From Blastocladiella emersonii ATCC 22665 (Eukaryota > Fungi > Blastocladiomycota): a stretch of 64,000 nt of DNA. The position numbers and the translations under genes are program-made. The first letter of the stretch is position 1, and each line of letters starts with the position of its first letter. Positions 4,535-57,578 of the stretch are shown here, one piece after another. Under the pieces are notes generated by a model that searched no databases, was not told the origin of the DNA, and was given only the letters and a program-made list of their open reading frames with translations. The stretch spans positions 868,001-932,000 of the forward strand of contig JANHCV010000014.1 in NCBI GenBank assembly GCA_025594325.1, read 5' to 3'.

Positions 4535-5923
4535 GGGTGCCGCTGGGGCGGGGTGGCGGTGGGGGAGAGAGAACAGGATGTCCGCTGCCTCGCCGAAGGC
4601 GTTTGTGCGCGGGTCCGTGTGGCGTCAGGGCTCGCCCTGCAAAGCGCCACGTGCCACAAGGTCACATGATGCTCACGCCGCCTCGCGTCGGAGATCTGCG
4701 CTCACCCTCCCAATGCACTTGCCCCCAGCGCGTGCAACCTCGCGCGCGAGCAGCTCGCGTTCGTCCTCGCGGATAAGGTGATGCCGAAGCCTGCTGAATT
4801 CGCGCAATCGGTCTTTTCGCAGGTGACTGATCTGAAAAGTGATGTTGGCAAGGCAAGCGAAGCGTCGCGGGAAGAGTCGATTGAAGGGGTCCGCCGATTA
4901 AATAAGAGCGCGCCGGCGCTCCCTGCCAACCACTCTCCTCGGACTCCATCACGGCCTTGCCCAACAAGTTACGACACTTGGTCGCTCCAGGTGGTGGCCT
5001 TCCCAATCAGCACCATGTGCAGCGATGCCACGGGTGAGCCCCGAACGCTCCAGTTTCGCGACCAGGCATCGCACCGCAGCTCTGTTGGCACAATGGAGCC
5101 GCGTTCACACGCTGGGCATCGCGCCTGGAGCAAAATCGAGACCGAGGAACGACAAATAGAGCTTGAAGTCGGCGGCCGTCGCGCCGCAAGCAAGCAACAT
5201 GGCGCGGGCTTTGTATCGCGCCGGGAGCCAGCTTACGCACGGCAAGTGTATCCGTCATGGCTGGCAGTTGAGAGCATGAACGGAAGTCGCGGTGGGCGAC
5301 CATCCACGGCGTGATGCTTCTGAAGCACAGAGATCCCAGCACGGATCGGCGGTGAATGCAAGCTGATTGAAGCGTTAATCGATCAGGCTACAGATCCAGG
5401 TTGAGGCTCGGTCTGCGCTTGCGCGATAGCTGGGCAGGAAGCCAAACCGGGTCCTCGTATTGCTAGCGACCTCGCCCGCGAACCGCGCGCTCACCAACCG
5501 TGCATGTGGCGGTCGAAAGATACACGAAAGTCGTGACCGATCGGATCCGAGAGTACCACGGCTCGACGATCGACGAGTCGAGGCGCAAGCAGCTCGGACT
5601 ACGGCGGCTAGTCCCGTTCGCCTGTGCCGCGGATGCGCTCGGTGAACGGCGGACCAGAGGGCAGAAGGATAAGCTCGTTCCACGTGTATTGCATCAACTC
5701 TTCAATGAGGCGTCCATTAAATTCATGGTCGGGCGAGGAGCATGGGGAGAGAGTTCGAGGCCAAGGGCGTGCTTCTGCCCCTGCTTCTACCCGCTGCTGC
5801 ACGTCCCCTCGACATAGTCCGTTCACGAATCCGAGCCGCCTTCACACGCACAGCAAGCGGCTCGTACAAGCCGAGGACCGAGTGACACGAGAAATAGAGT
5901 CTATATCATACACAGCACTCGCC

Positions 5924-8299: not shown

Positions 8300-9102
8300 C
8301 GTGAAGTGTTGATTCGTAGCGTAGAGATGCGTTGCAGCGTTGCGGAAGGGAGAGCGCGGACTGTGGCGAGGGCGGCGGGCGCACAAGTGGGCGTCGGCGC
8401 CGCGAACTGCTCGCTCGCCACGTGGCGCCGCCCACCACGTGGCGCGCCGATCCGGTCATGCAGTGTCTCCGCCTCGCTGCGAGACGCGTCGCGGCCACGC
8501 GTCTGTGTTCATTGAGTTCCGCTGAGGCCTCGTTGGACTTGTACACTAAGCGCTTGGCGCGGGTTGCGCTGCGCGGCCCGGGCGACCCGCGGCGTTGTGT
8601 CGCGACCTGCCCCTCACCGTGTGCAACACCGCCTGAGTGCGCTATTCATCGCCCCACAGACGTTGATGACTACTTCGATGCAAACTTGGTCACTCTTGAA
8701 CGCTCGCGTCGAGCGGGAGGCGAAGCAAAGGCCAAGCCCGCCGCGGGACATCACGTGCGCGGTGCGAGACGCGTCGCGCGCGCCGTGTCTCCAACCGCGC
8801 GACGCGTCGCCTTCTCCACACCGCACGCCGCGCCGGGACGCAAACGCGGGAGACGGCGATGCGACTTGCTGAAAACTGATCCCTGAATGGCGGCGACCCA
8901 AGACGCGGCGCCGCGGGGGCTCGCGTTCCTCCTGACGCCTGATCACCCCGCCTGCTCGGCCTAGTCTCTGCACAACCACCCGCAACAACAACAACTGTAT
9001 CTACTACTACATGCAACCGATGTGATCACACCACGCCGATCTGAACCCATCCCCTCGTCTAGCCACTCTCTTGCCGCGACCGCCTTTTGATCGCCGCCAG
9101 CC

Positions 9103-12100
9103 ATGAGCTCCAATACCCCGTCGCAGGGGCGGCGCGAGCTCGGGGCCGTCCCGCGAGACCTGCAGCCCGCCGCCGCGCCGGCGGCCGTCTCGTCTCCGAC
9201 ACTCGTCTCGCCCGGCACCGACCGGTTCTCGTCCAGCGTCGCGCCCGGCGGGACCGCGGCCGCGAACGTCTCGCAGCGACGCCGCGCGCACTCGGGCCTC
9301 TCGCAGTCGCAGTCTATGGACGGCATGGTACGGTGATCTCGTGGAAAGTCGGTCGAGCGGTAGCAAAGCTGACTCTCGCGCTCGTGTAGGCCGAGGTGCC
9401 CGTCGCAACTACGCCGCTCATGGCCCAGGGTCCGTCCGCCTCGCTTTTCACCAACCATCCGCAATCACTGACACCCGCCCGCCGCCGTTTGTAGCACGCG
9501 ACCTCGGCCCGAACGTGGCCGGTTTCAACAACCAAGTCCCGCGGCCCATCGACACGTCGGCGGCGCTGCCGCAGATCAACCACGCCATCGACCTCGGCAC
9601 GCCGCTGACTCAGACCTTCACGTCGCCGCACAGCGTGCACAGCCACGCTGGCTCGTCGCACTCACACTCGCAGCACCTCGGCCCGCCGGGCATGATGCCG
9701 GGTTCCTCGTCGTCGGGTCTCGTGCTCGTCGACCGGCACCCGAGCATGGGCCGGCACGCCAAGCCGAAGCGCCTGGTGCGCAAGCCGTCGGCGCGGCAGT
9801 CCGCGGCCGTGCAACCCGCGCCGGTGCCGCCGCAGCTCAGTCTGACGGAGCGCGCGCTCGCGGCGTCAGGCGCGATGGGGCTTGTCGAGACGGACCGCGT
9901 CGGCATGTCCGAGGGCCGGTGGTGGACGGTCATGGCGCGCGTCATGACGTGCTGGGCGCCGGGGTTTATTCTCAAGAAGACGATCGGCGACGCGGCCAAG
10001 CAGCAGGCGTGGCGCGAGAAGGTGGCGCTGTGCATGCTGATTCTGGTGGTGGGCGGCGCCGTCGCGTACCTGACGCTCGGGCTCACACGCACCATCTGCT
10101 CGGGCACCGACCGCAACGCCTTCTCGTACACGCAGGTGCGCGAGTTCACAGCCGACCGCCAGCCCAACTCGTTTGTGATCCGCGGCGAGCTGTACGACCT
10201 CACCAAGTACCTGGGCGTGCACAACAATTTCGCGTCGTTCAAGAAGCTCAACACGACCGCCAAGCTCTTCTTCCAGTCGCTCGCGGCCGCCGACGTCACG
10301 GCGCTGTTCCCGAACGCCGTCGACGAGTGCCAGGCGGTCATCACCAGCGCGGTCTCGTTCCCGTGCATGTCGCCGAGCTTCCCGTACATGGCGTACTGCC
10401 ACAACGTGGCCAAATCGGCGCCCGTCATCGACGCGCTCAAGGTCGGCCAGGTGCGGTTCCCGTGGGAGGACGTACTGGGCTCGAAATCGCTGCTCGTGTA
10501 CAACGGGCGCGTGCTCAACATGACGGCGTACCTCAAGGCCGGGACCAAGTTCCTGGGCAACGACTTACACGCCGAGATCGTCGAGACGCTCGGCACCGAC
10601 GCGAGCTACCGGCTCGCGCGCAACGAGCGGTTCGCGCGCGCCGCGCACTGCATCCAGTCCATGTACACGGTCGGGTTCATCGACACGGACCCGCCCGGGT
10701 GCATCGCCAGCAACATCATCATGTTCATGTCGCTGCTCGTGATCCTCGGGCTCATCTTGACCCGCTTCTTCCTCGCCGTCATGTTCGACTGGTTCCTCGG
10801 GTGGAAGCTCGGCAAGCTCCAGGTCTCCCGCGCCGCCTACGACCAGATGCGCCCGCGCGCGTCGTCCCGGTTCTCGCAGCTCATCCGCCCGCGCACGCTC
10901 ACGGCCAAGGGGTCCAAGGACAACATCCGCATGCAGGACGTCAACAGTGCGGCGGCCGCGAGTGGGACGGCTACCCCACCCAACAACGCGTCGCTCGAGG
11001 TCATGATCTCCGCGGCCGCGCTCGGGACCAGCGACGCGTCGCTCATGCCCGGCGCCACGACGGACCAGCCGTCGGTGCCCGACGAGCTGCGCCCGTACCA
11101 CACGGTGGTCCTGGTGACGTGCTACTCGGAGGGCGAGGAGGAGCTCAAGAAGACGCTCGACTCGGTGTCGGCGACCGACTTCCCGGACGACCAGAAGCTG
11201 ATCTTCGTGGTCGCCGACGGGATCATCACGGGCAAGGGCAACAAGCTGTCGACGCCCGACACGGTGCTGAGTCTCATGGAGGAGGTGGTGCTGGGCCCGA
11301 CCGAGCCCATGTCGTACGTGGCCATCGCGGACGGCGCCAAGCGCCACAACAAGGCGCGCGTGCACGTCGGGTGGTACCGGTGCGTCAACCACCGCACGCC
11401 TATCGTGCTCGTCGTCAAGTGCGGCGCCGAGGACGAGCAGGGGAAGCCCAAGCCGGGGAACCGCGGCAAGCGCGACTCGCAGATCATCCTCATGGACTTT
11501 TTCTCCAAGATCCTCCTCAACGAGCGGCTCTGCCCGCTCCAGTTCGAGCTCTTCTACAAGATCTTCGGGCTCACGGGCGTCAACCCGATTAAGTACGAGA
11601 TCTGCCTCATGGTCGACGCCGATACCAAGCTCCTCCCCGACTCGCTCGCCCGCATGGTCGCGCTCATGGCGCAGGACCAGCAGGTCATGGGGTGCTGCGG
11701 CGAGACCCGCATCGAGAACAAGTCGCAGACGTGGGTGACCCGGATCCAGGTGTTTGAGTACTACGTGAGCCACCATCTTGGCAAGGTGCGATCTTTGGGG
11801 GTCGGCGACGCGCGCGCGGCCATGGACTGACCTCGTGCTCGCGCTCTTCGCGCGTCCAGGCGTTCGAGTCCGTGTTCGGCGGTGTCACCTGTCTTCCCGG
11901 GTACGCATCGCTTGCGCGGACACGCTCGCGAGTCGCCGCGACTGACTGACCCGCCCCGCGTCGCGTAGCTGCTTCTGCATGTACCGCCTCAAGGTGCAGC
12001 GGCCCGACAAGCTGTGGGTGCCGATCCTGGCGAGCCCGCACATCATCCAGCAGTACTCGGAGAACGTGGTCGACACGCTGCACAAGAAGAACCTCCTGTC

Positions 12101-13799: not shown

Positions 13800-16261
13800 A
13801 TGAAGCCAATGAATAAATCACAACTTAACTCGATGCAACCTCTCGCGGATAACGACAGCACTATATCTATGGCGTCTCTCACGGAAACTGCGGACTGCGA
13901 CGAAGCGCACCTCGCGAGGCTGCCCGACGCACTCGTCACCCTGGTGCTCCAGCTCGCGCAGCCCCGCTCGACGCCTTGTACCGCATCTCGCCTTCTCGTT
14001 ACCTCGGCTCGCGAGCTCTCAATCTACCGCATCTGGGCGCCCGTGGTGCTTCGCCGCCACATCCACCCGGTCCTGCGTGGCGAGTACAAGGTGGCTCGCA
14101 ACACGCGCATCTTCAACGAGCTTGCGTTCATCGTCGACCAAGTCTTCTATAACCGGCTACTCGAGAACCGCGTCAACGACGTCGGTAACCCGGATGCGCA
14201 GCTTCTCCTTGCGCTCATGAAGGGTTTCCTGTACGACCAGCGCCAGCACGCGCGCCGGACCGCTGCGACCTTCGACAAGCAGTTGAAGTGGGCGGTCAAC
14301 GAGTGCTTTTATACTTCCCCAAACGCGGTTGCCGAGCTTGCAAAGCTCCGGCCAGACTATGCCACTCACGCTCACCTCGTCGCGCCTTACCTGATCCTTG
14401 GCGCCGCCGTGCTCATGGACGATGCCGACTTGCTTGAGACCCTGCTCGTCGCTGTCCAACAAGAGCTCCCCGCCGTTTTCGACGTGCGCATGCTGCCAAC
14501 GGCTTGGTGGTGCTTGACGATGCAGGGCGAGCTTTCCCTGGCCGGCTACGGTTCGATTGCGCAAATGGACCCCGAGCTCGAGCGCAGTCTGAAGCCAGCC
14601 CCGCTTCTGGAGCATCTCCTTCTGCTCTCAGCCGTTCTTTGGCGGCCCAACGCTTTCCGCGTGCTCAAGGACCAGCGCTTCGAACTCAGCATTGATTTGT
14701 TGCCGCATGTCTTTGGCAACAACACGATCGCGCCGTTCGCGATTGCGACCCTCACCAAGCAGACTCTCACGCCCAAGGAACTTATGCCCATCGTCGACTG
14801 GCAGCTTCGCACGCGCACGTCCGAGCCGCTCATCACGGCTAGCGGGGCCCACATCATCCATTACCTTCTCGACCCGCTGCCTCGGGATTACATTGGCTAT
14901 GCCGCCCAGCACTTTCCCGCCAGCCTCACCGACAGGCTGGGACCGCGCAATTTCGACGTGATCCGATCCCAGATTATGAAGTGGACCGTTGACGACTTGG
15001 ATCCAGAATTCGTTGCTCTGCTTGACAGTCTCGGTTTGCTCCAAACTGCGGCATGGAAACACCTGCTTTTCAAGGGCCTGTCCGAGGACAACGGGACTGG
15101 TGCCGGCAGCCTGTCAGCGTTTGTGGCGAAGCAACTTGGGCCGCGCCTCCAAGGAGTCCTCGTCGAGGGTACGTTACGTTTGAATGTGACCACCGAACCC
15201 GCCAGATCTCACACAGCTCGTTACGGTAGCATTCAGCACCAGCCTTCTGCTTGCCCACGAGTGCAGCCGTAGCACGGCTAACATCCTGTCTTACGGATGC
15301 TGCCACCTTGATCGCGATCAGTTCGAGGCCACGCTTTCCGACTTTGCGACTGCTCTTCGGAAAGCTCTTTTTATCATGCAGTGCGAGATCAAAGGCCCGA
15401 TTGCTCGCTCGTGCTCTATCTTGCAAGCTTTGAGCCGGATCTTTGGCTCCACAGAGGAGCGCCGGCTGAGCCTGTGGCTCCTCTTCCATCTCGCCAACGA
15501 GTTTCTTGCTATTGCCCGTAAGCCGCGGGTCCAGGACCTGTACAGCATTGCGTGGCTTCCGGCCATCGTTCTCAGTGACCCAGTGACCCGCGACGCCGCT
15601 CTCGCCCAAATCCGCGCCAAGCGCACCACCACCGCGCGTCATCATGCTCAACGGTCTCATCAGCACCAACGTCAAGACGCTCTACTCGCTGCGCGACGAC
15701 GGCGATTCCATGCCCTCAAAGCCCGAGGAGACGCCACACTGCACGCTTGAGGTGCACGCGTCATGGTCCTCGGCCATGGCTGACCTGCACCAGCTGATTC
15801 GCAAAGGCACGGCCTCGACCAACACGGCCATCGTGTGGTTCCCGTCCAACTATGCGCGCACCATCCGTGCGATCGTGCAGGACAAGTCGCATGGTGGACT
15901 TCGCGGCCGCTGCGACAGTGAGCTTGCCCAGAACCCAAACGGCGCCTGCTCGCGGTGCGGCGCCGCGATCGTTCCGCGCGTCGAGAAAGCGCTTCGGTTC
16001 TTGCTTTGCACTGAGCCCGCGGCCGCGCTCGCTGATCTTGGGCCCAACGTCGCGCTCCCGCTCGACTTTTGGGCGCTCGTACCCAGCGGCGGGCTCGACG
16101 GCGTCAAGGACTCCAAGTGGGTCTCGGACATGGCCCGCAGCGCAATCCGCGAGTACGACGTGGGGACCGCGCTGGCCGTGATTCACAAACTTCGCCGCGT
16201 TGCGCCAGTGGCGACCACGAGTTCTGCTGAGTTTCTCGTCGCGACTTTCAAGCTTCTTTGA
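13800..16261 (+). pseudogene. Family copy P1 (F-box-like + novel two-exon family), frameshifted
   Basis: Exon 1 13800-15168, intron 15169-15229 (GTACGT..TAG), exon 2 to 16261. A ~11-nt deletion near 15637 (TTAR-[xFLx]-IMLN in paralogs) shifts the frame. It could also be an assembly indel. Confidence 0.8.
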
Positions 16262-16426
16262 TCAAGCGATGCCCGGGGTGCTTGCGAGAGGCCGCTGAGA
16301 ACGAGCCGCTTGGGCGGGAATATATATACAGTCGAACGCGTCGGGTGAGTGACTCGGATGACACGCGTGGTGAGAGCTATGAGACACGCGAGTCGCTCGC
16401 TCTCCCATAGAGGACACGCAACAACC

Positions 16427-18887
16427 ATGAATCGAATGGATTCGCATCACGACTCTATGCAATCTGTTACTGGCACTGCTGCGGACCATGTTGACCGCGC
16501 GCCTGCGGCTCCATCAGTGGGAACCTCGGATGGACTCGTGGAGCTCGCGGTGCTTGCCGACCCCGTCCTTACGTTGGTCTTACAGCTGTCACGCCCGAGC
16601 TCTGCTGTTTGCGCTGCATCGCGCCTCTTTGTCGCCTTGGCTTGTGACCCGCGACTCGTTCGCATCTGGGCGCCCGTGGTGCTCCGCCGTTTTCTGAATC
16701 CGCGACTGCACGCTCGGTTCTTGCAAAAGCTGAGCGATGTGCATTTACCACGAGTTATTCTACCTCCTCAACCAGGACGGCTTCAACTCGACGCTTGGGC
16801 CTCTCGTTCGTGAACTAGCGAGTCCGGACGCGCAGCTCATGCGCGCGCTCATGACTGGCTTCCTCTTTGACCAGGGCATGCTCGCGCGCAAGCACCCATT
16901 GACCATGGAGAAGCAGTCGGCTTGGGCGCTGTCTGGGATCATTTACGCGTTGGCCGATCCGGCGGGCGACTTGGCCAGAAAGCGACCAAACTATCTCGCA
17001 CTCTCATTTGGCCGCGCCGTTTCTCATTCTCAAGGCCGTTGTGCACATGGACGACGCCGACCTGCTCACGGACCTGTTGGACGCCGTGCAGCGCGACCTC
17101 CCCAGCGTCCTCAAGATGAGCCTTCCGCCGTCGCAGTGGTTCGGCCTCACTTTGGCGGGCGAGATCGAGCTTATGAAGTCCGGCCTGCTGTCGTTTCTGA
17201 CTCCTGAATTCGAGCGCAGACTCGTTCCTAACTCACTGCTCGGATATTTGTGCCTACTTTCGGCCGTGATGTGGCGTCCCAACTCGTTTCGCGTGCTCAG
17301 CGGCCCGCGCTTCCGCATCGACATGAAGCGGCTGGCCCACACTTTCGGAATCAACACGGTCGCGCCTTTGGCACTCTCGGCGCTCCCCGGCCAAACCCTT
17401 TCTGACCCGCCCGCCGAGTACATGCCGATTTTTGACTGGCTGCTGCGTGAGCGCAAGCCCGGCTGCATGTGGTCTCCGCGGAGAATCCATCTGATCAACT
17501 AACTTCTTGCCTCAGCCCCGCGCGACTTTGTACGGTACGCTGCACAGCACCACCCGACGTGTCTCAACGAGGGGATGGAGCCGGGCGACTTGGCGGTGAT
17601 CCGCTCCAGAATCAAGGAGTGGAAGTACGAGGAACTCGATACGGACTTCATTGCCCTTCTCGATGGCTTCGATCTCTTGAGCACGGGCTCGTGGGCGGCT
17701 ATTCTTTCGATTAGTCTGGTTGAGGATGGGGGCACGGGTACCAGCGACGTCTCGGTGTTTGTGGTCGCTCATCTTTGGTCGCGGCTCACACCGGTTCTCG
17801 TGGAAGGTACGCGTGTCGTGGGATGGCTAAAACTCAGCCGTTGACAATACTTGCGCGCTTGCCCCGCGTAGCCTTGCGTATTCATGTCGCTACCAAGCTC
17901 GATAATGGACGCAGCACGACCTCTGTTCTGGCATACGCGCACCGCCAGCTTGGGCATGCGCAGTTTGAGGCTGCGCTCCCTGACTTTGCGGACGCGCTGC
18001 ATAACGCCCTTTCATTTATGCGGTTGCTAGCGGGCAACCCTCAAGCGTTTTCGCAACTTCTCATGCGAACAGTCAGTCGTCTCTTTAGTTGCACCGACGA
18101 GCGCCAGCTTAGCTCGTGGCTTCTATTCCGCTTCGCCAATGAGTTCCTCGCCGTTGTTCGCACAATCGATCTTCGTGACCTTCACGACTTGGGGTGGATC
18201 TTTGTTGTTTGCCTCGGCGATCCCGCGACACGCGAGGGCGCGCTCGCCCAAATTTGCGCCAAAGGCACCAACAAGGCGCGGCGGTTCCTTCATGTGGTTC
18301 TCTGTGGTCTTCTCGAACAGTCTCACAAGTTGCTGTACTCGCCGAACCCGCGCGAGAAGACGGACCGCTGCACGCTCGAGGCACACTCATCATGGACCGC
18401 CGCCATGTACGATTTGCACCGGTTGATCCGCAAGAGCACGGACTCGGTTGACAGCGCTGCAGTCTGGTTTTCGCCGGACATGGCGGACACTGTCCGTGCG
18501 CTTGTGCTGCGCAGAAGTCGCGGCGGTCTCCGCTATCGCTTCGAGGAGGGGCTCGCCGAGGACCCAACCGCAACGTGCTCGCGGTGCGTCGCGGCAGTTC
18601 TCCCGCGGGTTCAGCAAGCGCTCCAATTCTTGCTTTGCGTCGAGCCTGCTGCGACACTCAAGATTTTTGAACCTGATCCGGCGCTCCCGCTCGAATTTTG
18701 GCAACTCGTTCCTGACGGCGCGCTCGATGGCGTCAGGGATGTCGAGTGGGTCAGGAGAATGATTCTCAGCACCAACCGCGATCTTGGCACGACCACGGCG
18801 CGCGTAGTGCTCCGCGAGATTCGACGCTCTGTGCCGAGGGCGGCGACGGGGCCGTTTGAGTCGCTGTTTGCGTCGCTCAAGGTCTAG
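16427..18887 (+). pseudogene. Family copy P2, two frameshifts plus premature TAA
   Basis: Frameshifts near 16735 and 17005. In-frame TAA at 17500-17502 where P8 has TAT (INYLL). Intron 17807-17871. Exon 2 is intact to TAG at 18887. Confidence 0.85.
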
Positions 18888-28400: not shown

Positions 28401-30794
28401 CCTCGGGCCTTGTGCGCCGTCAGCGCGTACGCGAGCTCGAGCGGGAACTGGGCTCGATGGATCGTCTTGGATGTGCCGGCCACCTTGTTCTGGAGGCGGA
28501 ACGAGGCGATCTCGCGGCGCAGCGGGAAGCAGCCGTCGGGGATCCCGGGTAGCTTGGGCATGCGACCCAGATCCTTGTTGGGCCGGATGATGACTGCATC
28601 AATGTCATTGTTCGAGTCGGTGGCAAAGCCTTCAACACGGCCAATGACGCCGTTGACGATGCCGCGACTACACGATGCGAAGCGAGGAAGCGCTGGTGAG
28701 TCCACGCGCCTAATGGCCGGCGAATATGACGCGGAGACGTACAGCGTGTTGATGTTCCGCGTCACGATGACACGCGCGCCAGCAAACAGCTTGAGGGTAG
28801 ACGGGATGTGGTCCGTCTTGCTTGAGGGAAGCAGTTTTGCGAAGTCGAGCATGTGCCAGTCGCTGTCGCCCTGACCGCTGCTCTTAACAACGAGCTGCCG
28901 CCAAAGGAGTGGTCCGGTTGTGGAGGGCTTGCGGACGAGATCGACGCACTCGAGGTCAAAGATTTCGTCGGGTTGGAGACCGAGGCGACGCGCGTGTTTC
29001 GCGGCGGCCATCGAGTTCCACGCGTCGCGTACCGAGTTCTGCGCCGTGATGAGGACCTGGTCGCTCCAGTCGTCGAGCTGGCCTGGGTGCTGGGTGCTGG
29101 CCCAGTACGACGTCTGCTCGCCGCGAGCCGAGGTACTCGATCACGCGCTGCGAGACGTTACAGTTGTGCGGGTCGTTAAGCACGTTGTGCAAACCCGCGT
29201 CGCCCGACTGCCGCATCTGCTGGACGAGGAAGAAATCCGAGTCGAAGGCGAGCCACTGATCGCGACCAATGTTGGCGTCGGTTGGAGTTCTGCTGACCGC
29301 TGGCGGCTCCTTGCGCTTGGACGCGCGCTTCTTCTGCTGCTGCTGCTGCTGAGGCTCGCCGTCGACCTGCATCAAGTCACCATCATGAGCTGCATCCACC
29401 TCGGTTTCGGGTGCCCATTCGACCGGCTGCTCAGATGGAACCGTGAGCGAGCGGGCCATGACGGGCTCGAACTGGAAAAAGTCGCCAAACGCGAGGACGT
29501 GCAGGCCGCCAAACGGACGATGGTCGCGGCTCGGGTATAGCGCGTCGAAGCACAAGTGCATTGCGGCGAACAGCTCGGCGCCGACCATGGAGATCTCGTC
29601 GAGAAGGACAAACTTGACGGAGCGGAACAAGCCCTCGAGCTCGGCCTTGGCTTTGTCGCCCATCGGCTTGGTCGCCGAGACGACGGTGCCGATACCGCAC
29701 ATGGCGTGGATCGTGGAGCCGCCGATGGGCGCCGCGGCTGCGCCGGTTGGCGCGCAGATCTTGAGCCACAAACTGCTGCCCTTGGCGACGAACATGTCGC
29801 GGATCGAGTTAATGACGCGACTCTTGCCCGTGCCCGCCTCGCCGTGGACGAGCATGAGGAGCTGCTCGATGTCAGCGTCGCCGCGCTTGATGGCATCGAG
29901 CGTCGACTCGACGTGCTCGACGACGCGGCGCTGCTCGACGTTGAGCCCTTGAAGGCACGGGGCGAGTTGCTCCTGTCGCGCGAGCTGCACCCGGACGGCT
30001 GGCGGTGCGACACCGCCGTCTGCTTGAACGAGTCGAGCGCGAGGTGGCTCCGCCGAGCGTTCTGCAGCAAACCAACGGGCATCCTCGTCGGCCTTCCTGG
30101 CCAGATCGGCGTAGTTGGCGAGTTGCGCGAACCACGCCGGATCCGAGTCGACCTTGAGCAGCTGCTGGCGAAGCTCGAGTGGCAGAGCAGGCACGGGCGC
30201 GTTCGAGTTTGAGAGCAGTCCGTTGTGTACTGCCGACATGAGGAGCATGGCCGCGTGCTGGTCGTTCTGGGAGATGATCGAGAGGATCTCGTGCAGGAAA
30301 GCGTCGTTGCCGTGAGCTTCTTGCGCGATGCCGACGGGCATGATCTCACCGTCAGCCTCGTCGTCGTTACCCATGCCAGTACCGCCGGCGCGTCGAAGGT
30401 CGACCTGCTCGGGCGTCGCGCTGTTGTTGGCCTCCGAATCGTCATCCAGCTTGCCGGGCGACGTGTTCACGTAGTCACGAAAGTTGTTGATCCACCGGAG
30501 CCGGTCGCTGCCCTGCTCGAGCGTGCTTTTGAAGAGATCGAGCGTCTGCGACCACGTCTCGCCGCGAGCCGGAGCCACCTCGTTGATGGCGCGGAACGGC
30601 TTGAACAGGATCGTGGAGATCATGGCGCGCGACTCGGTGCTGCCGATATCGGACGACTGGCTGACCTGCTTGTTGAACAGCGGCACGGGAACGACCATGC
30701 TCGCGCGCATCGCGGCGACGCGATGTGTCTGGCGCACGCCACGAGTGCGAGACAGGAGGCGCGAGACAAAAAACGCGAGACACAATACGCGCAA
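28400..30794 (-). mobile_element. PIF1-family helicase copy 1 (Helitron-type), disrupted and 3'-truncated
   Basis: Motifs GEAGTGKS, APTGAAA, GGSTIH, LLDEISMV, FGGLHVLAFGDFFQFEPV, QQMRQSGD, LKLFAGARVIVTRN, GIVNG and QFPLELAYALTAHKARG. A 7-bp duplication tgggtgc at 29084-29097 shifts the frame. Intron 28742-28668. The YVALSR-type final motif and any HUH Rep domain are absent. Confidence 0.8.
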
Positions 30795-31139: not shown

Positions 31140-32106
31140 CCTACTGCTGAGAAAAATACCCTTCGAGGAGCGCTCGAGATGGTCAACAATGAAGCGAGTC
31201 GTCCCGGTATCAGTCCCGCCACAGCAAGTGTTGTTTTGCTCGTGGCCAAGCGCACGCTTGTGTTCGGATGCGGGTGCCCCGAGGTAAAAGGAGAGGCAAT
31301 AGCGATGGTCGCTGTGCAAATCCAAGAGCTCAAGAAGCGATTCAAAAGCGCTGCGCCACGGCGCCTGGTACGAGAGCGGGCAGTCCGGGCAGACCGTCAA
31401 TCCGGGCAGACTCGGGAAGATGAGATTCTTGTCAGACGAGAAGTGAGCCGCCAGCATCGCACAGAGAAGTTTCGCTGCAACGTCTCGATGGTCAAGTAGC
31501 TCGATCGCGCTATCCTTGATCACCTCGACACCAAGGATCGATGTCACGAGCCACGAAATTGCGTGCGACGAGGTGATCGATGGGAAGGCGTCCTCCATCC
31601 GATTGGGAATAAGGAGCGTGACGATGGTGAAAGCATCGAGTCGGTCGGCCGTTGGCTCATCCACATCGAGAAGGGCGACGATGGCAGCGAACCGACGAGC
31701 CGTATCGGGGTCCTTGATCTTGAACATTTCGTCCGTGAAGCGTTGGACAAGGTCGGGATGGTCGGTCGCGCGCGACAAATAGACCAAGCCGTCAAGGACG
31801 CGCCCGCTGATCGGAGCCTCGTTGCAGGCGCTTGCAAAAGCTACCCGACAGACATAGGTAACAGTGAATGGCCACGTTAGCGATCGAGGATGATGCAACT
31901 GTACCTTCGACAAGGACTGATTTCCATGTCGACTCGTGTTTCGGGTACTCCTCTCCGATCAGTTGCGACGATGATCTCAGCGTGTCGATGGCCGCTGAGA
32001 GCTGCTGTGAGACCAGCTGAAACGCGTGAAACTTCTCGCGACACTCGGTTGAGCAGGGCGCGCTTTGCGTACTCGGAACCTCGTTAAGGAAGATAAAAGC
32101 GCACAA
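31140..32106 (-). pseudogene. Family fragment P6 (end of exon 1, intron, most of exon 2; closest to P10)
   Basis: TWKSVLVEG, intron 31904-31841, then AFASACNEAPISGR, aligning to P10 (TWEAVLEKG|AFSAAYNEPSISGR). No N-terminus, and the C-terminus is replaced by unrelated sequence. Confidence 0.75.
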
Positions 32107-38255: not shown

Positions 38256-40313
38256 GTTGGAGTGCGCCTTCACGTCCGCTGTTCTCAGCTGTAGCTTTAG
38301 CGAAGCTGAGTTTCTGTTTGAGCAATTGAAACCTATCAGAGACATCAACCTGCACGTGAACCAAGCTTCGTCTGCAGTTCTGGCCCCCGACCCCAATTCT
38401 CTTGGTCTAGCTCTCATTCCAAGTCCCCGACTCCCCGCATTGGCCTCAGCCCGGTGTAATAAAAATTCTGACACTGCTTATTTGATGCGGCGACCTACTT
38501 GAAAGTCTTCAAATGTGCATCAACCTGGAGTGGCAGTGGAGCGGTCAGTCGGTGCTGTCTCCCACTGCTGCGCCACCCGCTGAGCCACCCGATGAGCCAC
38601 CGCTCTCCGACCCCGCCTGCACCTCCGTCGCCAACCGTTATGACCGCTTTCGAACAACAATCAGCGAAGTATCAAGGTCGCGCAAAAATCATTTTGAAAC
38701 ACCCGGCGCAAAATATAGGTCCTCTATTTCCGCTGGTTCCCTTAACTGTCTTCAATCTGGCCGCCCGAACTTCCGCGCTTCGATCCGCCTTTGTCTTTCT
38801 CTTTAGGCGCAAAAAAGTCAAGAGTTCGTGAATCGCCCGATTACCGAGGTAGTTCAAGGTCATGGATCTCGGTTGTCGTTCGCAAGGAAATGATTTCATT
38901 CTCGGCGATGGGTAGCGTCTACAAAGTGATTACTGAGGGGTAGCGATGACGTGACGTACACATTGACTGGAGAAAGCTCAACATGCACGCAGCAAGGCGA
39001 GAGCGGTGCGACGCGACCCCGAAACAGACGGTGAGTACAACACCGGGGTCCACGACCACGACTGGATCACGCCCGCTAACTGAGCCTAGCCCGGCGATAA
39101 AGAAGAAGGCTCAGCAGCGTCAGGCGTGTACGCGCCCACTGCATCATACTGAAAGTAGTCAGCCGCGAATCGTGCTTGACACCGCGTACCGCGTCGCGCG
39201 GGTCGACCTGCGCGACACAATTCTTTCTCGCTCCAACGCGTCGTTGACGAGGTTACAGGCGAGGCGCACATGCGCATCGTTGACGTGATCGACGTCAAGG
39301 ACTGGCCCTGCGTCAAGATCCCCTTGGGCTCGATCCTGATCGCTGGTCAGACGTCGGCCGCGGGCGAAATATCCTCACGGCGACGCTCGTTACGTTCCGC
39401 TCAATAGCCATCGCCCAGAACGCGAGTCAGGGTGACGCCCATACACTGCGGCGCTTCACGACGTCGTCCAAATTATCCAAGTTTTTATTAACCTTCCCGC
39501 CCACTGCAACACACCGCGCTTGATCCTTCACGCGCCGATCAGCAACCCAGCGACCGTCGCTGCCGCGGACCTGGCCTTGGCCTTCTCGTCAGTGGCTTCT
39601 TCCCTCGCGAAGAGTGCCGCCGATGCAGCCTCGTACCAGTTCGGAGAGGTGGATCGCAAGCTTACGAACCGCAACACAGAAAGCACACGGCGGGAACAGG
39701 TGCGTGAGGTCGACTGGTTCTTAGACTGCTTCTCATGGACCGAGACCATGAGCAGGTGCTCGGAGAACGTTCTCTCCAGCAAGGCTGCGGACGATCCGCG
39801 CTCAGGAACAAGGCGGCGTGGGCGGCCGCGACCTTGGCCACGAGGGCTTCTCCCGCTCCTCAACTTTGTTAACTCAGTTAACTTAACTGGTACGGACTTT
39901 CGGGCAACCAGCGCGACATGTTTGAGTCCAGCCTCAGTTCCGACCATGAGCCACGGCTTCGAGTGCTTGCTCAACCGAAAACGTGATTTTCCGCAGCCAC
40001 GACGCTCATGGCCATGGCGACGTTGGCCATAGACGCGTGCCTGCCGAGTGCGTTGTGCCTGCGCTGCTGTTCTCATCATCGACACGTCAGACTTCAGCTA
40101 CAGCTGAGACCCAAGTGTGTGCGCAGCACACACACCTAGTTGATTATACATCACATTGCTGAGCTCGATTTCTCGTCTTGAAGGCCTCGGACAGCGGCAA
40201 CGCGCCACGCCACATCACGTTTGAGCGGAGCGGCGATCGCCTGCATTCACGCAACTCGTTGATCGCCGCCGCCCACTCTCCCTCTCCTTCCCAACGCTAG
40301 ATCACGCTCAACC

Positions 40314-49652: not shown

Positions 49653-51001
49653 TGAACGGCTCTTGGCTTCTGGCTGCAGTTGATTGTGCGGTTGTTATCG
49701 TAGTTGTTGCGCCAATCAGGTAGTTGCGCAATCCGCAAGCTGTTGCTTGACAACGGGGCAGCGTGTGCACATTTCCAAGATTCAAGGACGTCCGCACCTA
49801 ACAACAAATTGCATATTTATTCCCGCTCGCTACGTTGACGGGCTCCGTCGCTCGCGCTTCTCATGAACGCTAATTTCCGACACTGCGCGCTCAAACACGG
49901 GAAGACTCTTGCGCGCCCGCGAGATCCGTTTCAGCTCGTCGAGATGACAAACCTCCATCCCAGGCGCGCCAGCGATGCGACGCACGTCCGCATCCTGGAG
50001 CACATTGACAAGGGCGTCGTCGGGAATCCATTCCGTGAGGGCTGGGGCGACTGGCGAAAGTGCGTCAATCAGATCGGCCAACAGCCGCTGCATTTTACTT
50101 TGCAACTTGGCCACAATCAAACGAGTCGTGCCGGTGCCAGTGGGAGCGCAGCATGTGTTGGCGAGCTCGTAATCGTGCGCATACTCGTGGTTCGGTTTCG
50201 GCGCGGCAAGGTAGACGGCGAGCGATTGGGACAGGTCAGTCTCGGGGCTCACAAGCGCGAGGAGCGAGACGAAAGCGTTGCGCCACGGGGTTTGATACGA
50301 GAGCGGGCAGTCAGGACAGGTCATGAAGCCGGGGGGAAGGGTTGGGAAGATAGGGTCCCTGTCGGACGAAAGATGCGCAGCGAGCATCGCGCACAGCAGT
50401 TGGCCAGCAGTGCCCAAGCCACGAATGACCTCGAGGGCGCGACCTTTGGTCCCCTCAACTGCCAGAACCGAGGTTGTCAGCCACGAAAGCGCGTGAGAAG
50501 CTATGATCGTTGGAAAACTGTCCATCTTGGTGGGAAGCAGTCGCGTGACGATTGCTAGGACATCGAGTCGGGCGGCCGTCGGCTTGTCCACGTCAAGCAG
50601 TGCAACGATGGCCCCGAAGCGCCGGCCCGGATTGGGATCTTTGAATTTGAGCGCCTCAGCCGCAAAACGCTCGGTAAACTTTGCATGGCCCGCTGCAAGC
50701 GCTAACGCAAGCAAACAATCAAGGATGCGGCCGCTGATTGAGGGTTCGTTGTAGGCGGCTGAGAATGCTGTAAAATGTGCAATAGGTGAGTGGTTGGCTA
50801 GGTTTATCCACAGGGAGACAAGCAAAAGGAACGTACCTTTCTCAAGTACCGCCTCCCAAGTAGCTTCCCGAGGGGTCATGGCGGTGCAAAGTGAACCAAC
50901 CACGTCATCTTGCTGTTCAAGCAAGGCACGGCAAAGCAGCTTGGCAAAGTAGTCGTGTCCAAAAAATGCAAACGGATACGTCATCGGGAAATTGGGGGTT
51001 A

Positions 51002-51291
51002 AGATCTCGAAGAGATCTAGCTAGATCTTTCATAGATCTTAGGGTTTCGGGGGCCAAAATAGCCGGGGAAGATCTAGGTAGAAATCCACTGCAAACCTAT
51101 GTTTTCTATAGATCTCACCATAGATCTATCCCTCCCGTCCAGCCGAGCTCGACTCCGTCAGGGCCGATAGATCTTTGCAACGAACGTAGATTCCCCGCCG
51201 CTGAGGAGACCTGTGAGATTTTCAAGCGATCTTCGCCAAGCGAGAGATCTCAGCACACAACGGGAGAGTTCGATGAGTGAGAAACAGATCT
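51002..51291. repeat. Left subterminal AGATCT array
   Basis: Ten perfect AGATCT at 51002, 51013, 51023, 51034, 51070, 51110, 51122, 51169, 51245 and 51286, plus variants. Confidence 0.92.
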
Positions 51292-51307
51292 GTATTGTGC
51301 ATCAAAT

Positions 51308-52151
51308 CTACGCGTCGTCGTCGTCGTCGTCGCTATCCAGCGCGACTCCGTACGGACTCGCGCCTCGGGCACCCGCCGCCGAGGCTGCGGTCGCAGCGGC
51401 AGCGGCAGCGGCGGTGGACTTGGTGAACGACCGGCGCACGACCTCCTCCGTAATCATGCGGACAAACGGGTGAGCGGCCCGGCGACGCTCGATGCTCGCA
51501 ACCAGCGAGTGGAAGTAGCTGCGGCGGAACATGTCGACATCCACGATGGGCGCCGCCGACCCCTGCACGTACGACTGGACCACGGGAGCAAACTACACAG
51601 ACACGTTGGGGCGTGAGCTACGAAGCGAGTCAGGATCGTGCGCGACGCGTACCAGCTCGATGAAGTACACCATGTCGACGAGCGTGCGATCAGGTGCGAG
51701 TCGATCCACGATGGCGAACAGGTGCGGCCCGGGCAGCTTTGCTACGTCGGCCAGCGGTGGCGTTAGCGTGGGCGACCAGACACGCGAAAACACACGCACG
51801 ACTCGGGGAGGGGGACAGGTCGCCTAGGGTGCGCGAGCGGGTGCCATGGGCAGTCAGCTTGACGATGCCGCGGGCGTAGGTTCTATAGGCGGGGCGGTCC
51901 GGGTCAGATCGCTGGTTGGGAAGCAGCCCAAAGCGGACGATCGCAAACATACGTCGTTGCCCTGCGGTTCCAGTCGAACGTGAGGTTGAGCAGCACCTCG
52001 GACTTGCGGTTGCTGGGCGCCGTCGCCGCGCGCGCGCCACGTCGTGCGGGATACCGATGGCGGCGACGATACGCGGCGCCATGAGCATGCGACCGCAGGC
52101 CGTCTCGAGCCCCAGGAAGGATAGGACGGCAGGATCGACGAGAGCGTCCAC
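51308..52151 (-). CDS. Spliced gene of unknown function inside the TIR element (5' part unresolved)
   Basis: Introns 51952-51883 (GTATGT), 51799-51742 (GTGCGT/CTAAC) and 51652-51593 (GTACGC) splice in frame. They give SNRKSEVLLNLTFDWNRRATTTYARGIVKL...KLPGPHLFAIVDRL...VYFIELFAPVVQSY...DSDDDDDDA*. Probable slip in a (GC)n run near 52030. Confidence 0.6.
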
Positions 52152-53271
52152 GTCGCCGACGCCAGCGAGGTTCAGAGCGTCCGGGGGGCGAAGGGTGGCG
52201 TCGGCCGGCTTGGGCGGGCAGTATCAGCCGCGGCGGGACCTGGACAGCGGGAGCACGAGAGAGGCGTCAGTGAGGGCAAACCGGTGCGACGGTCAGCGGC
52301 GCGGCGTGAGGCAGCAGTTGGTGGCGGCCGTGCGAGGTGACGAGGTGGCGTGCACATGACGGCGCAGGGAGGGTCTGGCTCGTACCCGGCGCAGGCCATG
52401 GCGATGTGCCCGATGCAGTCCTGGAGCAAGTGCATGGAGTTGGATGCGTCGTAGGGGAGTTGGGGGGAAGGACGAGTGGCGGGGGAGGAGAGAGGAAGTC
52501 GGCGCCGGCGAGGGTGGGCGGTGGGCAGTGGCGACCGAGCATAGGACTTGGCCCAAAACAAACGCCGCCGATCCTCACGTGCGCTTGACCGCCGCCTTGC
52601 TTGACAGCTTCGCCGCGTCGCGTCGGTCCATGTCTCCTCCCCTCTTGTCAAGCATACACAACGCAGGTCTGAAGATCTCATTCCTGACACGCTGCAACTC
52701 CCTCGCCGCGTGGTTCCGTGGTCGAACGATCTCGAAACAGCTGCGGATCCTGGCCGTCGCTGCTCTGCCCGACCTGCTACGTGGTGAGATGCGCGAGCCG
52801 GAACTCGCTGATCCGTCCTGCAAAATTGTTGGCGGCTCTACAACATCGTGATTACGCCCGCTTACGACCTCGCTCCCGCTTGAAGGCACACTGGCAGGCA
52901 CCCGCAACCTTGATTCCTGTCGTGCCCGTGCAGCTCTTCAACAGCTCCATTTTCACGTTCCTTGACGCCGATCCTGCACACCGCCTCGAGGGAATCGATG
53001 CCCCTGGCCCTTTCTCCTTCCCACTTCGTTGGTCACGCTGCATGTGTGGTGCTCCCTGTTTGCTCACTTGAACCACGATTCTCCCGACCCGCCTGTGCGA
53101 CGCGCTGATGCACGACTGAGAGATAGTCCAGTGAACTGCTTGATTTATTCCAAACGCGACTATGGAGGACAAAGGCAGCGATGATCGGTATTGTGATTTG
53201 AGAGTCAAGGACGCGCCGCGCGAGTTTTGTCTCAAAGTCGTTCGCTGCGCGAGTGCAAGCGCTCGACTCCT

Positions 53272-53450
53272 TCCTAGATTTGTGGTCGAACACCATAGAT
53301 TACTCGTAGATCTATGTCGGGAGCCAAGATCTTCGCGAGCGGAACCACTCCGGACTGGTCGAGCGGGGCTAGATTTCCGCAGGGCTAAGATCTTCGTAGA
53401 TCACAGTGATCTAGGAAGATCTTCGTGATCCACCGCAGCGGGGTGATCCC
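53272..53450. repeat. Right subterminal AGATCT array
   Basis: Perfect AGATCT at 53308, 53327, 53388 and 53417, plus AGATT, AGATCA and TGATC variants. Confidence 0.88.
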
Positions 53451-54667
53451 CCATTTCCCGATGGTAGTCGACTCGATATCGCGGTATGTTATACGGCGCC
53501 CATTGTCATCGACCAACAGGCTTTTCTTGACCATCCAATCAACTTCGGTTCTGCCCCAGGCGTCCAAGTCCGCGCCAACCTGGGTGGGCGCGCGGGCCAT
53601 AATGAGAGGAAGTGCAAACGGTACGTGCTCAATGAGCAGATCAAGGGCCGTCTTCTCCCCCACAAACGTATTGGACCAGCCGTGCTTGTAGAGTAGCGCC
53701 ATGATGCCGGCCACGCGCTTGTACGATGGAGCCCGATCGCACATTCCATAATACACCGGGACGGCGGTAACCTCGTCCTCCAGTGCGCCAATAAGCTCCT
53801 TCGTGTTGACGCCATACTGCGGGTTCAACAACAGCTCGAACGTCTCGTCCTGCCAGTAGTTCACAGCAAGGAAAGCCAAGACATCCATCAGGCGGAGTTC
53901 AAACTGGGAGTTTTCGAAGGGGTCGGGATGCTCGTAGTCAAAGGGAAGCACCGAGTCGCTTAACATCTTGGCCCACTCGGACCACAGGAGAGCGAGTTCA
54001 AGCAGCTCTGGCCAGTAAGCTTGGATATCGTCGAGTACCTGCTGAAGGAGAAGGGGGGAGCCGGTCATGGTTGCATGTGTCGCGACGATCAGGTGAACGG
54101 CAAGCGGGTTCTGGAAGAGTTGTCCCGGCAAGGCAAGCTGAGCGACTTCGACAAGCTCAATGACATGAAAGCCGGACTCCTCGGCGGCATCGGGCAGCAA
54201 TGTGCGACGCTGCGCCTCGGCTCGGCGCCTGGCACACGGAATGAGGGCATGCATCAGCGGAACGGTGCGAGAGTAGCTGGCGGCGAGTGTCGAGGCAGTC
54301 CGAGCCTCATCTCGCGGATTAGGGTAGTGGCGAGTATCTGGGATTTGAAGTAAAGTTGAGACACATTCCAGAGCACCCTCGGATGACTGGGAAGCGAGAC
54401 GGGAGATGATCCATGCAGGGAGTGCGAGCGGATCGGACGCAAAGCGATGCATAGCTTTCGAGGCGAGGACGACCGTCACGCGCGGTCGTGCGAGCTGGAC
54501 CACAGCAAGCACGAGATCGGTTGGAAGATTTCCAAAGCGGAGCGCCCGCATCGTTCCCGGTGAAGGTGGCCGAGTAGATTGCATAGTCATTCATTGGTGT
54601 CACCTCCATTTGCTTCATGACAGCGTCTGCAACGGGAGAGCGAAGCGCGTCGTGGCGTCTTCCTCCC

Positions 54668-55160: not shown

Positions 55161-57578
55161 TCACAAGTCTGGCGAACCGTCGAACGTGTCCTCGAGCAGC
55201 ATCGCGTCCAGCACGTTGAGAGCCTCTGAGCTGCTGCGAGACGCCGACATGGCGCAAAGAGCTTTGCGGAACTCGGCCATTCGCACGGTCTGCGGCCCCA
55301 CGCGCACAAGTTCACGCATCACGGCGTCTGCCGGATCATACTCTGTGAGACGGACAGCAGCTGCAGCAAGCAGGGTCGTGCCCCAGATCCCGTCGAGCGC
55401 ACCGTCCGGAACGCACCTCCAAAACTCGATTGGGAGGTCTTGAGCTGAGTCGGACGTCTGGAGCAACTCGAGGACGCACTTCGAGTCCATGCGTACGAGA
55501 AATTCGACCACGCGATGCCAAGGATAAGGAACAAGAATGTCACCGCAGGTGCACGAATTCTCGCGCCGCTGCCACATCGCAAGGATAGTGTCAGCAAAGG
55601 CGGGATCCATGAGCATGTTTGTCATTTCGGTCCCGCCATGGCAAGGCAGGTCCGAGATGGAGAGCGCCCCGTCGTGAATCACAAGCAGCTCGGCAAGCGT
55701 GTCAAAGAACGACTGCTGGCTCGAGAGCGGGCAAGTTTGACACGTGGTGCGCCCATTGCCGAGGGGCAGCGCAACGTACGTATGCGGTTGACGCTGTGTG
55801 GAAAACAAGAGAAGCGAAATATGAGCTGCGGCCGTGCCCATTTCGCGGATCACCGTAACAGCCGAATCGTGAGTTGCTGGGTCACGAAGTGCTGCGACCG
55901 TGAGCCAAGCCATATAAAAGAGGTCTGCTCCATCGCGCTGAACCAGCGACGTAGTGAGAAGCGCGTTTGCAAGCAGAAAGTAGGGCCAATACGTTATGTT
56001 CTCCAACTGGCGTAGGTAGTGATGGGCAAACAATTTTTCTGCAACGCCGGGGACGACCATGGGAAGAGCGCGATCAAATGTTGGTTGCAACTCCGAAGCG
56101 GCGCTGGCCATGAGCTCCTGGATGCGGTCGGGGAAATGGCAAACGGCAAAATTGACAACCTCAGTCGGCTTTACAACCGAGCCCAAGAGACATTCATTAA
56201 TGACTAGACAGGGCATCGAAGCCATTAGCATTAGCGGTTGAACGGCATGGGATAGCCAGCGTTTCCAGCAAAGCGTAACAGTTGGTGTACCTCGAGCAAG
56301 CACAGCGCCAAGTCGATCTCCAAAGCGCTTGTCAACAAGAGCGGAAAGCGCCAATGAGCTGTCTTGCGAAAAAATAAGTTGGCGCAGTTTGCAGTCCCAG
56401 AACCAGTCGTTAAGAATGCCGTGCTTCATCAGAACAGCAAGAAATGGCGCAAAGTCGGGATCCAGCGTCCACGACCCATGCGCACAATGGTTGATGAGAG
56501 TCAGCAAGTCATCCGGATCGTTTGCGGGATCAGGCAGGAAGCCACGGTGCTGGGCCGCAAGGTGCGCAAGGAGCACAGGAGAGGGAAACCTGCACAGTTC
56601 GAGGGCAAGGAACGTATCACCGACTCTGATGAGCGGTGGATTGCTCCAGGTATTGACCAGCATAAAGTCGAGAAAGTAGATGGCATCCTCGATCGAAGCA
56701 TTGTCAGGGTCAGCGATTCCGACACACACCAAGTTCGCGGCAAATGGCTTGCGCGTGCTTATGAACAACATATCCGTGTCGCAGCCAAAGCGAGGGTCCA
56801 GGATCACCCCTAAGGTCTCCCGCTCCACCAAAGTGAGCGCAAGGAATGCAAGCACATTGGCAATTTGCGGGTCGGGTGACTCAATGCTGAGCTCGTCAAG
56901 GAGGATAGGCAGCTCAGCATGCATGTACGCGAGGTTCGAGTGAAGCTTGATCCACTTGGCCCACGGCATACGCGCCAAAAGAATATCAGGAGCTTTTGTG
57001 AGCGTGGCTTCAAGCAGGAGGCCAAGCGTTGATGACGGGGCATTATAAACTACTTCAATGAAGCCCTGGAAAAGCGAGTGGATAGGGTACTTGGTGGTAG
57101 GAAGGTAACGACGCTGGACTTGGTTAAGTGGCTGGCGAAGCAGGTTGGCCATGCGGTCGGCGGTGTTTTCCAATCCTCGTAGCAAAGCCTGTATGATGTC
57201 AAGCAGACAGTATACGGTGGCAAGGAACAGGGGCTCGATGTCATTGAACTTGAGTGGCCGGTCGTCATCTTCATCGTCGCAAACGTCGAGCACAGCGCTC
57301 ATCAGAGTCGCAGGAGTGGAAGCGCCGTCGTCCGGACAAGTCCCAGGGTGATGTTCGATAAACAAGTCATTCCAGCGGCGTTCAATCCACATTCGCTTCA
57401 CCTGCAGTTCACCGGACAGGAGCGCGAGTGCGCGCGAAGCAAGGCGGACACAGGGCCGCGGCGTGACGAGCTGGAGGACCATTGCCGTGAGCTCGGCCGG
57501 CAGCGACGAAAAGTCGAACGAGTCATAAATCGCAGTTTGCAGCAAGTCTCCTTCATTTTCCATGGGTGGTGTGTTCAT
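55161..57578 (-). CDS. Family copy P11 (divergent), intact
   Basis: Open 805-codon frame containing an in-frame 87-nt family intron (56290-56204, GTACAC..TAG). FSSLPAELTAMVLQLVTPR at the start. Also WLTVAALRDP, CQTC and LPIEFWRCVPDGALDG. Confidence 0.82.
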   Translation of the reverse strand: MNTPPMENEGDLLQTAIYDSFDFSSLPAELTAMVLQLVTPRPCVRLASRALALLSGELQVKRMWIERRWNDLFIEHHPGTCPDDGASTPATLMSAVLDVCDDEDDDRPLKFNDIEPLFLATVYCLLDIIQALLRGLENTADRMANLLRQPLNQVQRRYLPTTKYPIHSLFQGFIEVVYNAPSSTLGLLLEATLTKAPDILLARMPWAKWIKLHSNLAYMHAELPILLDELSIESPDPQIANVLAFLALTLVERETLGVILDPRFGCDTDMLFISTRKPFAANLVCVGIADPDNASIEDAIYFLDFMLVNTWSNPPLIRVGDTFLALELCRFPSPVLLAHLAAQHRGFLPDPANDPDDLLTLINHCAHGSWTLDPDFAPFLAVLMKHGILNDWFWDCKLRQLIFSQDSSLALSALVDKRFGDRLGAVLARGTPTVTLCWKRWLSHAVQPLMLMASMPCLVINECLLGSVVKPTEVVNFAVCHFPDRIQELMASAASELQPTFDRALPMVVPGVAEKLFAHHYLRQLENITYWPYFLLANALLTTSLVQRDGADLFYMAWLTVAALRDPATHDSAVTVIREMGTAAAHISLLLFSTQRQPHTYVALPLGNGRTTCQTCPLSSQQSFFDTLAELLVIHDGALSISDLPCHGGTEMTNMLMDPAFADTILAMWQRRENSCTCGDILVPYPWHRVVEFLVRMDSKCVLELLQTSDSAQDLPIEFWRCVPDGALDGIWGTTLLAAAAVRLTEYDPADAVMRELVRVGPQTVRMAEFRKALCAMSASRSSSEALNVLDAMLLEDTFDGSPDL

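Follow-up and report, generated by a model that had tools for sequence, protein, structure and literature searches.

The 64,000-nucleotide stretch of the genome of Blastocladiella emersonii ATCC 22665 (GCA_025594325.1) analysed here, a part of contig JANHCV010000014.1 that we call the window, carries at 50982-53463 an element of 2482 bp with CATCGGGAAAT inverted ends that splits a long open reading frame (ORF). The element, the window's own copy of a repeated family (locus L002), is placed on the minus strand, which is that of its internal gene. The element is genuine: a non-autonomous transposon, inserted recently, that exists in multiple copies and duplicates 2 bp of its target (target-site duplication, TSD). 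The left terminal inverted repeat (TIR), CATCGGGAAATTGGGGG, lies at 50982-50998 on the plus strand and is kept in all copies, with the variants CATTGGG and CAGTGGG; the right one, given as its reverse complement CATCGGGAAATGGGGGA, lies at 53447-53463 on the minus strand and was delimited by inverted-repeat and terminus searches and by comparison of the copies. An earlier sequence-only reading of this DNA had described the inverted termini as 16/17 bp. They are where it placed them, but the inverted-repeat search aligned 50982-50997 (CATCGGGAAATTGGGG) with 53448-53463 (CCCCCATTTCCCGATG) at 94% complementarity across 16 nt, and a count of 16/17 needs one gap. The terminus search gave no second match to the element terminus in the whole window. 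The direct repeat GT that had been noticed on both flanks is present directly outside the element, at 50980-50981 and 53464-53465.

Both ends are rich in the palindrome AGATCT. The window contains 24 copies, compared with 11.5 +/- 3.6 in shuffled sequences (none of 100 shuffles reached 24), and 15 of the 24 are found inside the element, that is, in 3.9% of the window length, leaving nine for the other 61.5 kb. The left subterminal array (51002-51291) has ten perfect palindromes, the first four 11, 10 and 11 bp apart, and eight of the ten are unchanged in all four aligned copies. The right array (53308-53448) is made of four perfect copies (53308-53422) and four variants that preserve the GATC core (at 53399, 53408, 53427 and 53445); the latter alternate with perfect copies and give a spacing of about 9-10 bp. 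Overall, the spacing in the arrays is 9-12 bp. The ten plus four perfect copies at the ends had been counted correctly in the sequence-only reading, but their strict confinement to the ends does not hold, since a lone internal AGATCT appears at 52673, outside both arrays. The accessory protein TnpA of En/Spm binds a short motif that is repeated many times in the subterminal regions, and by analogy with these TnpA sites the arrays, spaced at one helical turn, would be candidate binding sites for a transposase or an accessory protein.

When the element and 2 bp are deleted in silico, one uninterrupted frame is recovered on the minus strand, from 54590 to 49830, with 758 codons (375 + 383) and a stop. 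The upstream half (53464-54590, minus strand, 375 codons, N-terminal) runs 79 nt into the element before it meets a stop, and the downstream, C-terminal half (49830-50981, minus strand) provides 383 codons and the stop. A fused gene of 735 codons had been predicted, and the single open frame is confirmed whereas the length is not. The rejoined junction is exactly the one predicted, ACT ACG TAT (T-T-Y), and the corresponding empty site would read GGATACGTAGTCGAC, with a single GT. Deletions of 5 or 8 bp instead of 2 also leave the host frame open, so it is the GT repeat and not the frame that sets the duplication at 2 bp. The insertion is young, as had been claimed: the element and its nearest copy share 98.6% identity, and neither host half has yet lost its open frame. 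No joined form of the locus, the empty allele, was found in the Logan contigs, where only the runs of one sample hold the locus and the contigs bridge both junctions. Long open frames were also hit by other copies of the family: the one at L014 sits in an 805-codon ORF of a PIF1 helicase, and that at L003 in a frame of 456 codons.

The interrupted host ORF has two paralogous stretches within the window, at 31173-31841 (55% identity) and at 55161-57578 (24-34%, collinear with both halves). The latter (805 codons) and 49830-54590 (758 codons), both on the minus strand, lie in tandem as two long members of one divergent ORF family. No Pfam family was assigned to the host ORF; an Atlas search with it pointed, as a lead, to F-box-like proteins (score 0.95, with 173 features shared), and the family is lineage-specific and possibly F-box-like. 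The 805-aa paralogue had no match among 5.8 billion proteins. Neither the interrupted ORF (758 codons) nor the neighbouring one (805 codons) figures among the called genes or in the public protein set, a gap that concerns the annotation of the genome.

The family is well represented in the genome. A protein search with an internal ORF retrieved three annotated hypothetical proteins of B. emersonii ATCC 22665, and the clusters of these proteins include 12 annotated copies of the internal gene, a minimum for the number of gene-bearing members, each of about 2.5 kb. From the same assembly we delimited eight further independent full-length copies, seven of which (L001, L003, L004, L006, L011, L013 and L014) are 95.3-98.6% identical to the window copy. 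The eighth, L005, is an older copy of 5.1 kb, with 86-90% identity to that of the window and a nested insert. A 140-bp miniature, flanked by an AA duplication, was found at L011 3746-3885. In every fetched copy the similarity breaks off at the same two end bases, as expected if other copies with the same termini exist, which the sequence-only reading had proposed to look for. All ten members begin with CA and finish with TG, and the shared ends start CATYGGGAAAT. All loci were searched for further termini by fuzzy matching and scanned for paired CATCG-type TIRs bounded by a 2-bp TSD; only the known members were returned. A CATCG-type TIR pair around CLPTM1 (window 5117-9877) was discarded as a match expected by chance, and so were all four matches of a TIR scan of JGI metagenome contigs.

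The Logan contigs (one sample available) cover the element at 3-10 times the depth of its flanks, and they join it, exactly at 50982 or at 53463/53464, to at least three flanking sequences different from those of the window copy. They also include a form with three skips relative to the window copy, which is either an internally deleted or a more diverged relative. Locus L006 also has, at 11775-11900, a single sequence that resembles an end (CATTGTTGGGAAGGGGG); five AGATCT copies and a stretch of poly(A) come after it, and no second end was found within 8 kb. It is probably related to the family, in truncated or diverged form. Locus L012 duplicates L011, and the two were counted once. They correspond to inverted stretches of 16.7 kb on JANHCV010000011.1 (446415-463186 and 509272-526043) that are 99.97% identical over the whole fetched length, each with one full-length copy and one 140-bp miniature; the cause is either an inverted segmental duplication of large size or an artefact of assembly.

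We tabulated the bases that flank ten insertions, all read in window orientation. Perfect 2-bp duplications of varied sequence were found in seven: GT/GT in the window copy, AC/AC in L001, TT/TT in L003 and again in L011, AT/AT in L006, CA/CA in L014 and AA/AA in the miniature of L011. None reaches 3 bp, and by our own calculation the chance of seven perfect matches in ten, at 1/16 each, is about 5e-7. The targets are GC-rich, coding-like DNA. Two of the remaining three insertions have reciprocal flanks, TC/GC in L004 (4996-7462, i.e. JANHCV010000012.1 854603-857069) and GC/TC in L013 (6996-9462, i.e. JANHCV010000012.1 891607-894073). These two copies are 99.96% identical (one difference in 2468 bases), have opposite orientations and unrelated flanks, and are 34.5 kb apart. 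Their flanks would be reciprocal because of an inversion between two inverted copies with original duplications TC and GC, and they point to an inversion of 34.5 kb through recombination between the copies, or to a flip in the assembly. Counting L004 and L013 as products of inversion, nine of the ten insertions fit a 2-bp duplication without sequence preference; the consistency of the TSDs among copies, on which the sequence-only reading depended, is borne out. The last one, L005, has flanks CG/TC.

These flanks bear on several other superfamilies. A spliced, host-like gene between TIRs is what would be expected from a gene-capturing Mutator-like element (Pack-MULE), and hAT and Tc1/mariner also have non-autonomous members. 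Mutator-like elements (MULEs) duplicate 8-11 bp of their target, hAT elements 8 bp and Tc1/mariner elements the dinucleotide TA. The flanks here have just 2 bp in common, and the duplications, GT, AC, TT, AT, TT, CA, AA, TC and GC, never are TA; the three superfamilies are excluded by these data. In addition, the protein search and the annotated copies gave no parental gene outside the element from which a Pack-MULE could have captured its cargo. We give an origin of this type hardly any credit.

The element is not an empty shell. At 51308-52435, on the minus strand, it contains an orphan gene of five exons (52435-52386, 52012-51953, 51882-51800, 51741-51653 and 51592-51308) that encodes 188 aa and is annotated at NCBI as the hypothetical protein P0001, with H9P43 locus tags. 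Its four introns are all GT-AG and the spliced translation is exactly P0001. The same five-exon gene is present in every full-length copy, and carries signs of purifying selection. No Pfam family was found for the 188-aa protein or for any other internal ORF, in agreement with the non-autonomous nature proposed for the element, which has TIRs and a TSD, lacks a transposase ORF inside and exists in multiple copies with common ends. Two ESM Atlas searches with the exon translations retrieved only unrelated matches of low recognition, and the matches of P0001 among 1.84 billion representative proteins were copies of the element only, with no relative outside it. A match of 1206 aa was rejected as an artefact of tandem repeats. 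The single-sequence AlphaFold model of the protein was uninformative (pLDDT 36.7).

The gene is intact in the window copy and in L001, has stops in L003, L006 and L014, and is frameshifted in some copies. Two copies with 34 differing sites in other parts have the gene in identical form. We compared the distinct variants among the seven independent young copies with an expectation derived from the mutation spectrum of the non-exon part of the element, with CpG context. There were 20 synonymous and 17 non-synonymous variants where 16.4 and 36.3 were predicted (Poisson p = 3e-4, omega ~0.38), i.e. silent changes keep pace with the neutral expectation and amino-acid changes reach about half of theirs. 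These figures are moderate evidence that the 188-aa protein has mattered in the lineages that transposed. Most likely, it is a gene of the element with a role in its own spread or control rather than a decaying passenger.

The CMCT lineages (CACTA/EnSpm, Mirage, Chapaev and Transib) have in common 5'-CA..TG-3' ends and TSDs of 2-5 bp, and within this clade the PlavakaB families, described in December 2025, have 2- or 3-bp TSDs and the termini 5'-CATCA..TGATG-3' (PMC12730594). The CA..TG ends of the CMCT/Plavaka elements are found in ten of the ten members of our family, and a TSD of 2 or 3 bp, as in PlavakaB, in the seven insertions with perfect duplications and, via reciprocal exchange, in two more. 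The termini of the element, CATCG..CGATG (with the variants CATTG and CAGTG), match four of the five terminal bases of PlavakaB. Ends shown for these families, CATCAGAAATTTGGTG, CATCAGTAAATGTC, CATCAGCATTTTGGGAG and CATCACGAAACAGGGAC (Figure S2 in PMC12730594), have in common with our TIR the CATC start, a GAAA/AAAT core and a GG(G) block; some of the ends in that figure, such as CATCACGAAACAGGG and CATCAGAAATTTGGTG, resemble our CATCGGGAAATTGGGG, and in an ungapped count of our own CATCGGGAAATTGGGGG agrees with the end of PlavakaB-1_AuSu, CATCACGAAACAGGGAC, at 11 of 17 positions. The described families PlavakaB-1_SLL, -2_SLL, -1_SCH and -1_AuSu (PMC12730594) have in common with ours ends that start with CATC and finish with GATG, and a 2-bp TSD of no fixed sequence. 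They differ in their hosts (basidiomycetes, here a blastocladiomycete) and in being autonomous elements of 6-9 kb that carry a TET/JBP gene, whereas ours has 2.5 kb and is devoid of transposase; the dense AGATCT arrays and the orphan five-exon gene are particular to our element when set against them.

For this non-autonomous cut-and-paste DNA transposon the comparisons suggest the PlavakaB lineage, within the CMCT clade, and a Plavaka-type transposase that moves it in trans. We consider this probable, and PlavakaB is the best available assignment, one drawn entirely from the ends and the TSD length. The mobilising enzyme would be a DDE transposase of the Plavaka type whose gene lies in another part of the genome; it would recognise the CATC ends and cut the target with a stagger of 2 bp, and the AGATCT arrays may serve to position it. 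The sequence-only reading had placed the element in an uncharacterised CMC-like family with unusual termini. The CMC-like affinity remains the best reading, but the element is better seen as a member of a described lineage, since PlavakaB ends resemble CATCGGGAAATTGGGG, and the termini lose their unusual character with the CATCA..TGATG ends and 2-3 bp TSDs already described in PlavakaB families (PMC12730594).

A canonical CACTA/EnSpm element was rejected, as it would have CACTA (or CACTG) ends and a 3-bp TSD in place of the CATCG ends and the 2-bp TSD observed. En/Spm and its dSpm/I derivatives are alike in their short TIRs, in the motif repeated subterminally at both ends, in having non-autonomous members that are moved in trans and in their insertion in genes; they differ in their ends and TSD and in the motif, of 12 bp and asymmetric in En/Spm and a 6-bp palindrome here. 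For Mirage and Chapaev, also of the CMC superfamily, Yuan and Wessler are said to have given in 2011 TSDs of 2 bp or 2-3 bp, and their ends are of the CA..TG type; however, these ends start with CAC and the lineages are from animals. Both were set against the element by description only.

The enzyme itself was sought with a Pfam scan of 195 ORF segments (cut-off 170-210 aa or more) taken from the window and from sequence flanking nine loci (about 190 kb). It recovered only PIF1 helicases, domains of long terminal repeat (LTR) retrotransposons and two PIF/Harbinger DDE_Tnp_4 genes. Longer copies with a DDE ORF, which the sequence-only reading had proposed to look for, did not appear among the fetched loci either: the only longer copy there is the 5.1-kb L005, and we rejected it as the autonomous partner, as it is an old copy whose extra 2.6 kb is a nested Helitron2-like insert.

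Each of the two DDE_Tnp_4 transposase genes has a copy of the family no more than 10 kb away, and they bring up the PIF/Harbinger-ISL2EU-Spy (PHIS) group, the second group in eukaryotes for which 2-bp TSDs are known; an ISL2EU-like member of it could move the family. ISL2EU elements do make 2-bp TSDs, typically AT and in AT-rich targets (PMC4122938), and Harbinger relatives have TSDs of 0, 2 or 3 bp (PMC12730594). The likeness ends with the TSD length. AT is only one of the nine duplications found here, in targets of varied sequence that are GC-rich and coding-like, and the ends are CA..TG, while PHIS ends, both at these loci and in Figure S1 of PMC12730594, start with GG. ISL2EU elements have a THAP-type transposase and a YqaJ ORF, and neither a THAP nor a YqaJ ORF was found in the scanned 190 kb. 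The one Harbinger that could be delimited (L006 15459-19362) has GGAGAGG ends and an ATT TSD, unrelated to CATCGGG. We regard a mobilisation by an ISL2EU-like enzyme as very unlikely.

Several observations weigh against an assignment to PlavakaB and against the importance given to the orphan gene. The 195 ORF segments contain no matching transposase, whether Plavaka, CMC or other. Ends and TSD length, the features that link the element to Plavaka, may arise by convergence; at the fifth terminal position it has G (or T) where the published PlavakaB ends have A, and the published PlavakaB families all come from Agaricomycotina. L005, the oldest copy, is an exception in having no TSD and a mutated CAGTGGG end. 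Regarding the gene, the signal of selection comes from 37 variants and an ab initio gene model, with no RNA run listed for the gene; several copies have the stops or frameshifts mentioned above, and against the old L005 copy omega rises to 0.76, with the frame still open.

A rival explanation is a transposase of an undescribed lineage, the PlavakaB-like ends being convergent and the 188-aa protein being part of a two-component machinery, for example as the binder of the AGATCT arrays. No transposase was found near any copy in the scanned sequence, the 1.84 billion representatives include no homologue of the orphan protein apart from copies of the element, its gene is depleted in non-synonymous changes, and a more diverged subfamily, seen in the joints of Logan contigs and in L005, retains the ends and pieces of the gene. 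On the other hand, both ends and TSD closely fit a lineage that is described, the structure model of the protein gives no help (at the pLDDT cited above), and its small size (188 aa) and the lack of recognisable catalytic and DNA-binding domains rule the protein out as the transposase itself. We see this explanation as improbable, though less so than an ISL2EU-like enzyme. A related proposal that we would put forward only tentatively, and think somewhat less improbable, makes the element one half of a two-component system, in which the 188-aa protein would bind the AGATCT arrays or counter silencing, like TnpA of En/Spm, and would be kept because the copies that encode it transpose better; the mobilising enzyme could then be either a Plavaka relative or undescribed.

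Returning to PlavakaB as the preferred assignment, the family would extend to an early-diverging phylum a lineage that has so far been delimited in mushroom-forming fungi only. We found no paper describing transposons of B. emersonii; the genome paper of this fungus is without repeat analysis, and a survey from 2017 reported very few DNA transposons in the sole blastocladiomycete that it examined. The family may serve as a study model, with its exact ends, 2-bp duplication, palindromic candidate binding site at helical spacing, miniatures, an inversion involving two copies and insertions that break ORFs. The orphan gene in every full-length copy, with amino-acid changes below expectation, is the only one of its features to go beyond what routine annotation would provide.

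Other mobile elements were met at the same loci. The insert nested in L005 (7686-10305) belongs to a repeat family that starts with TCTCAGCTGTAGC and is inserted after T and before GTT; a second copy of its ends is in the window at 38283-40138. Near the 3' end, this family has the inverse of its own start followed by a GC-rich hairpin (GTGTGTGCGCAGCACACAC) and CCTA, a layout that we take to fit Helitron2/Helentron-type elements. The window also contains at 28956-30794 (minus strand) an ORF of 612 aa with a PIF1-like helicase domain (E = 1e-20), related to the 805-codon ORF interrupted at L014 and probably derived from a Helitron. Finally, the Harbinger at L006 15459-19362 is an apparently complete PIF/Harbinger element with 69-bp TIRs that start with GGAGAGGTTGCGCAG and a 3-bp ATT duplication; it encodes a DDE_Tnp_4 transposase (ORF at 15552-16778, E = 1e-18) and, on the opposite strand, one more gene.

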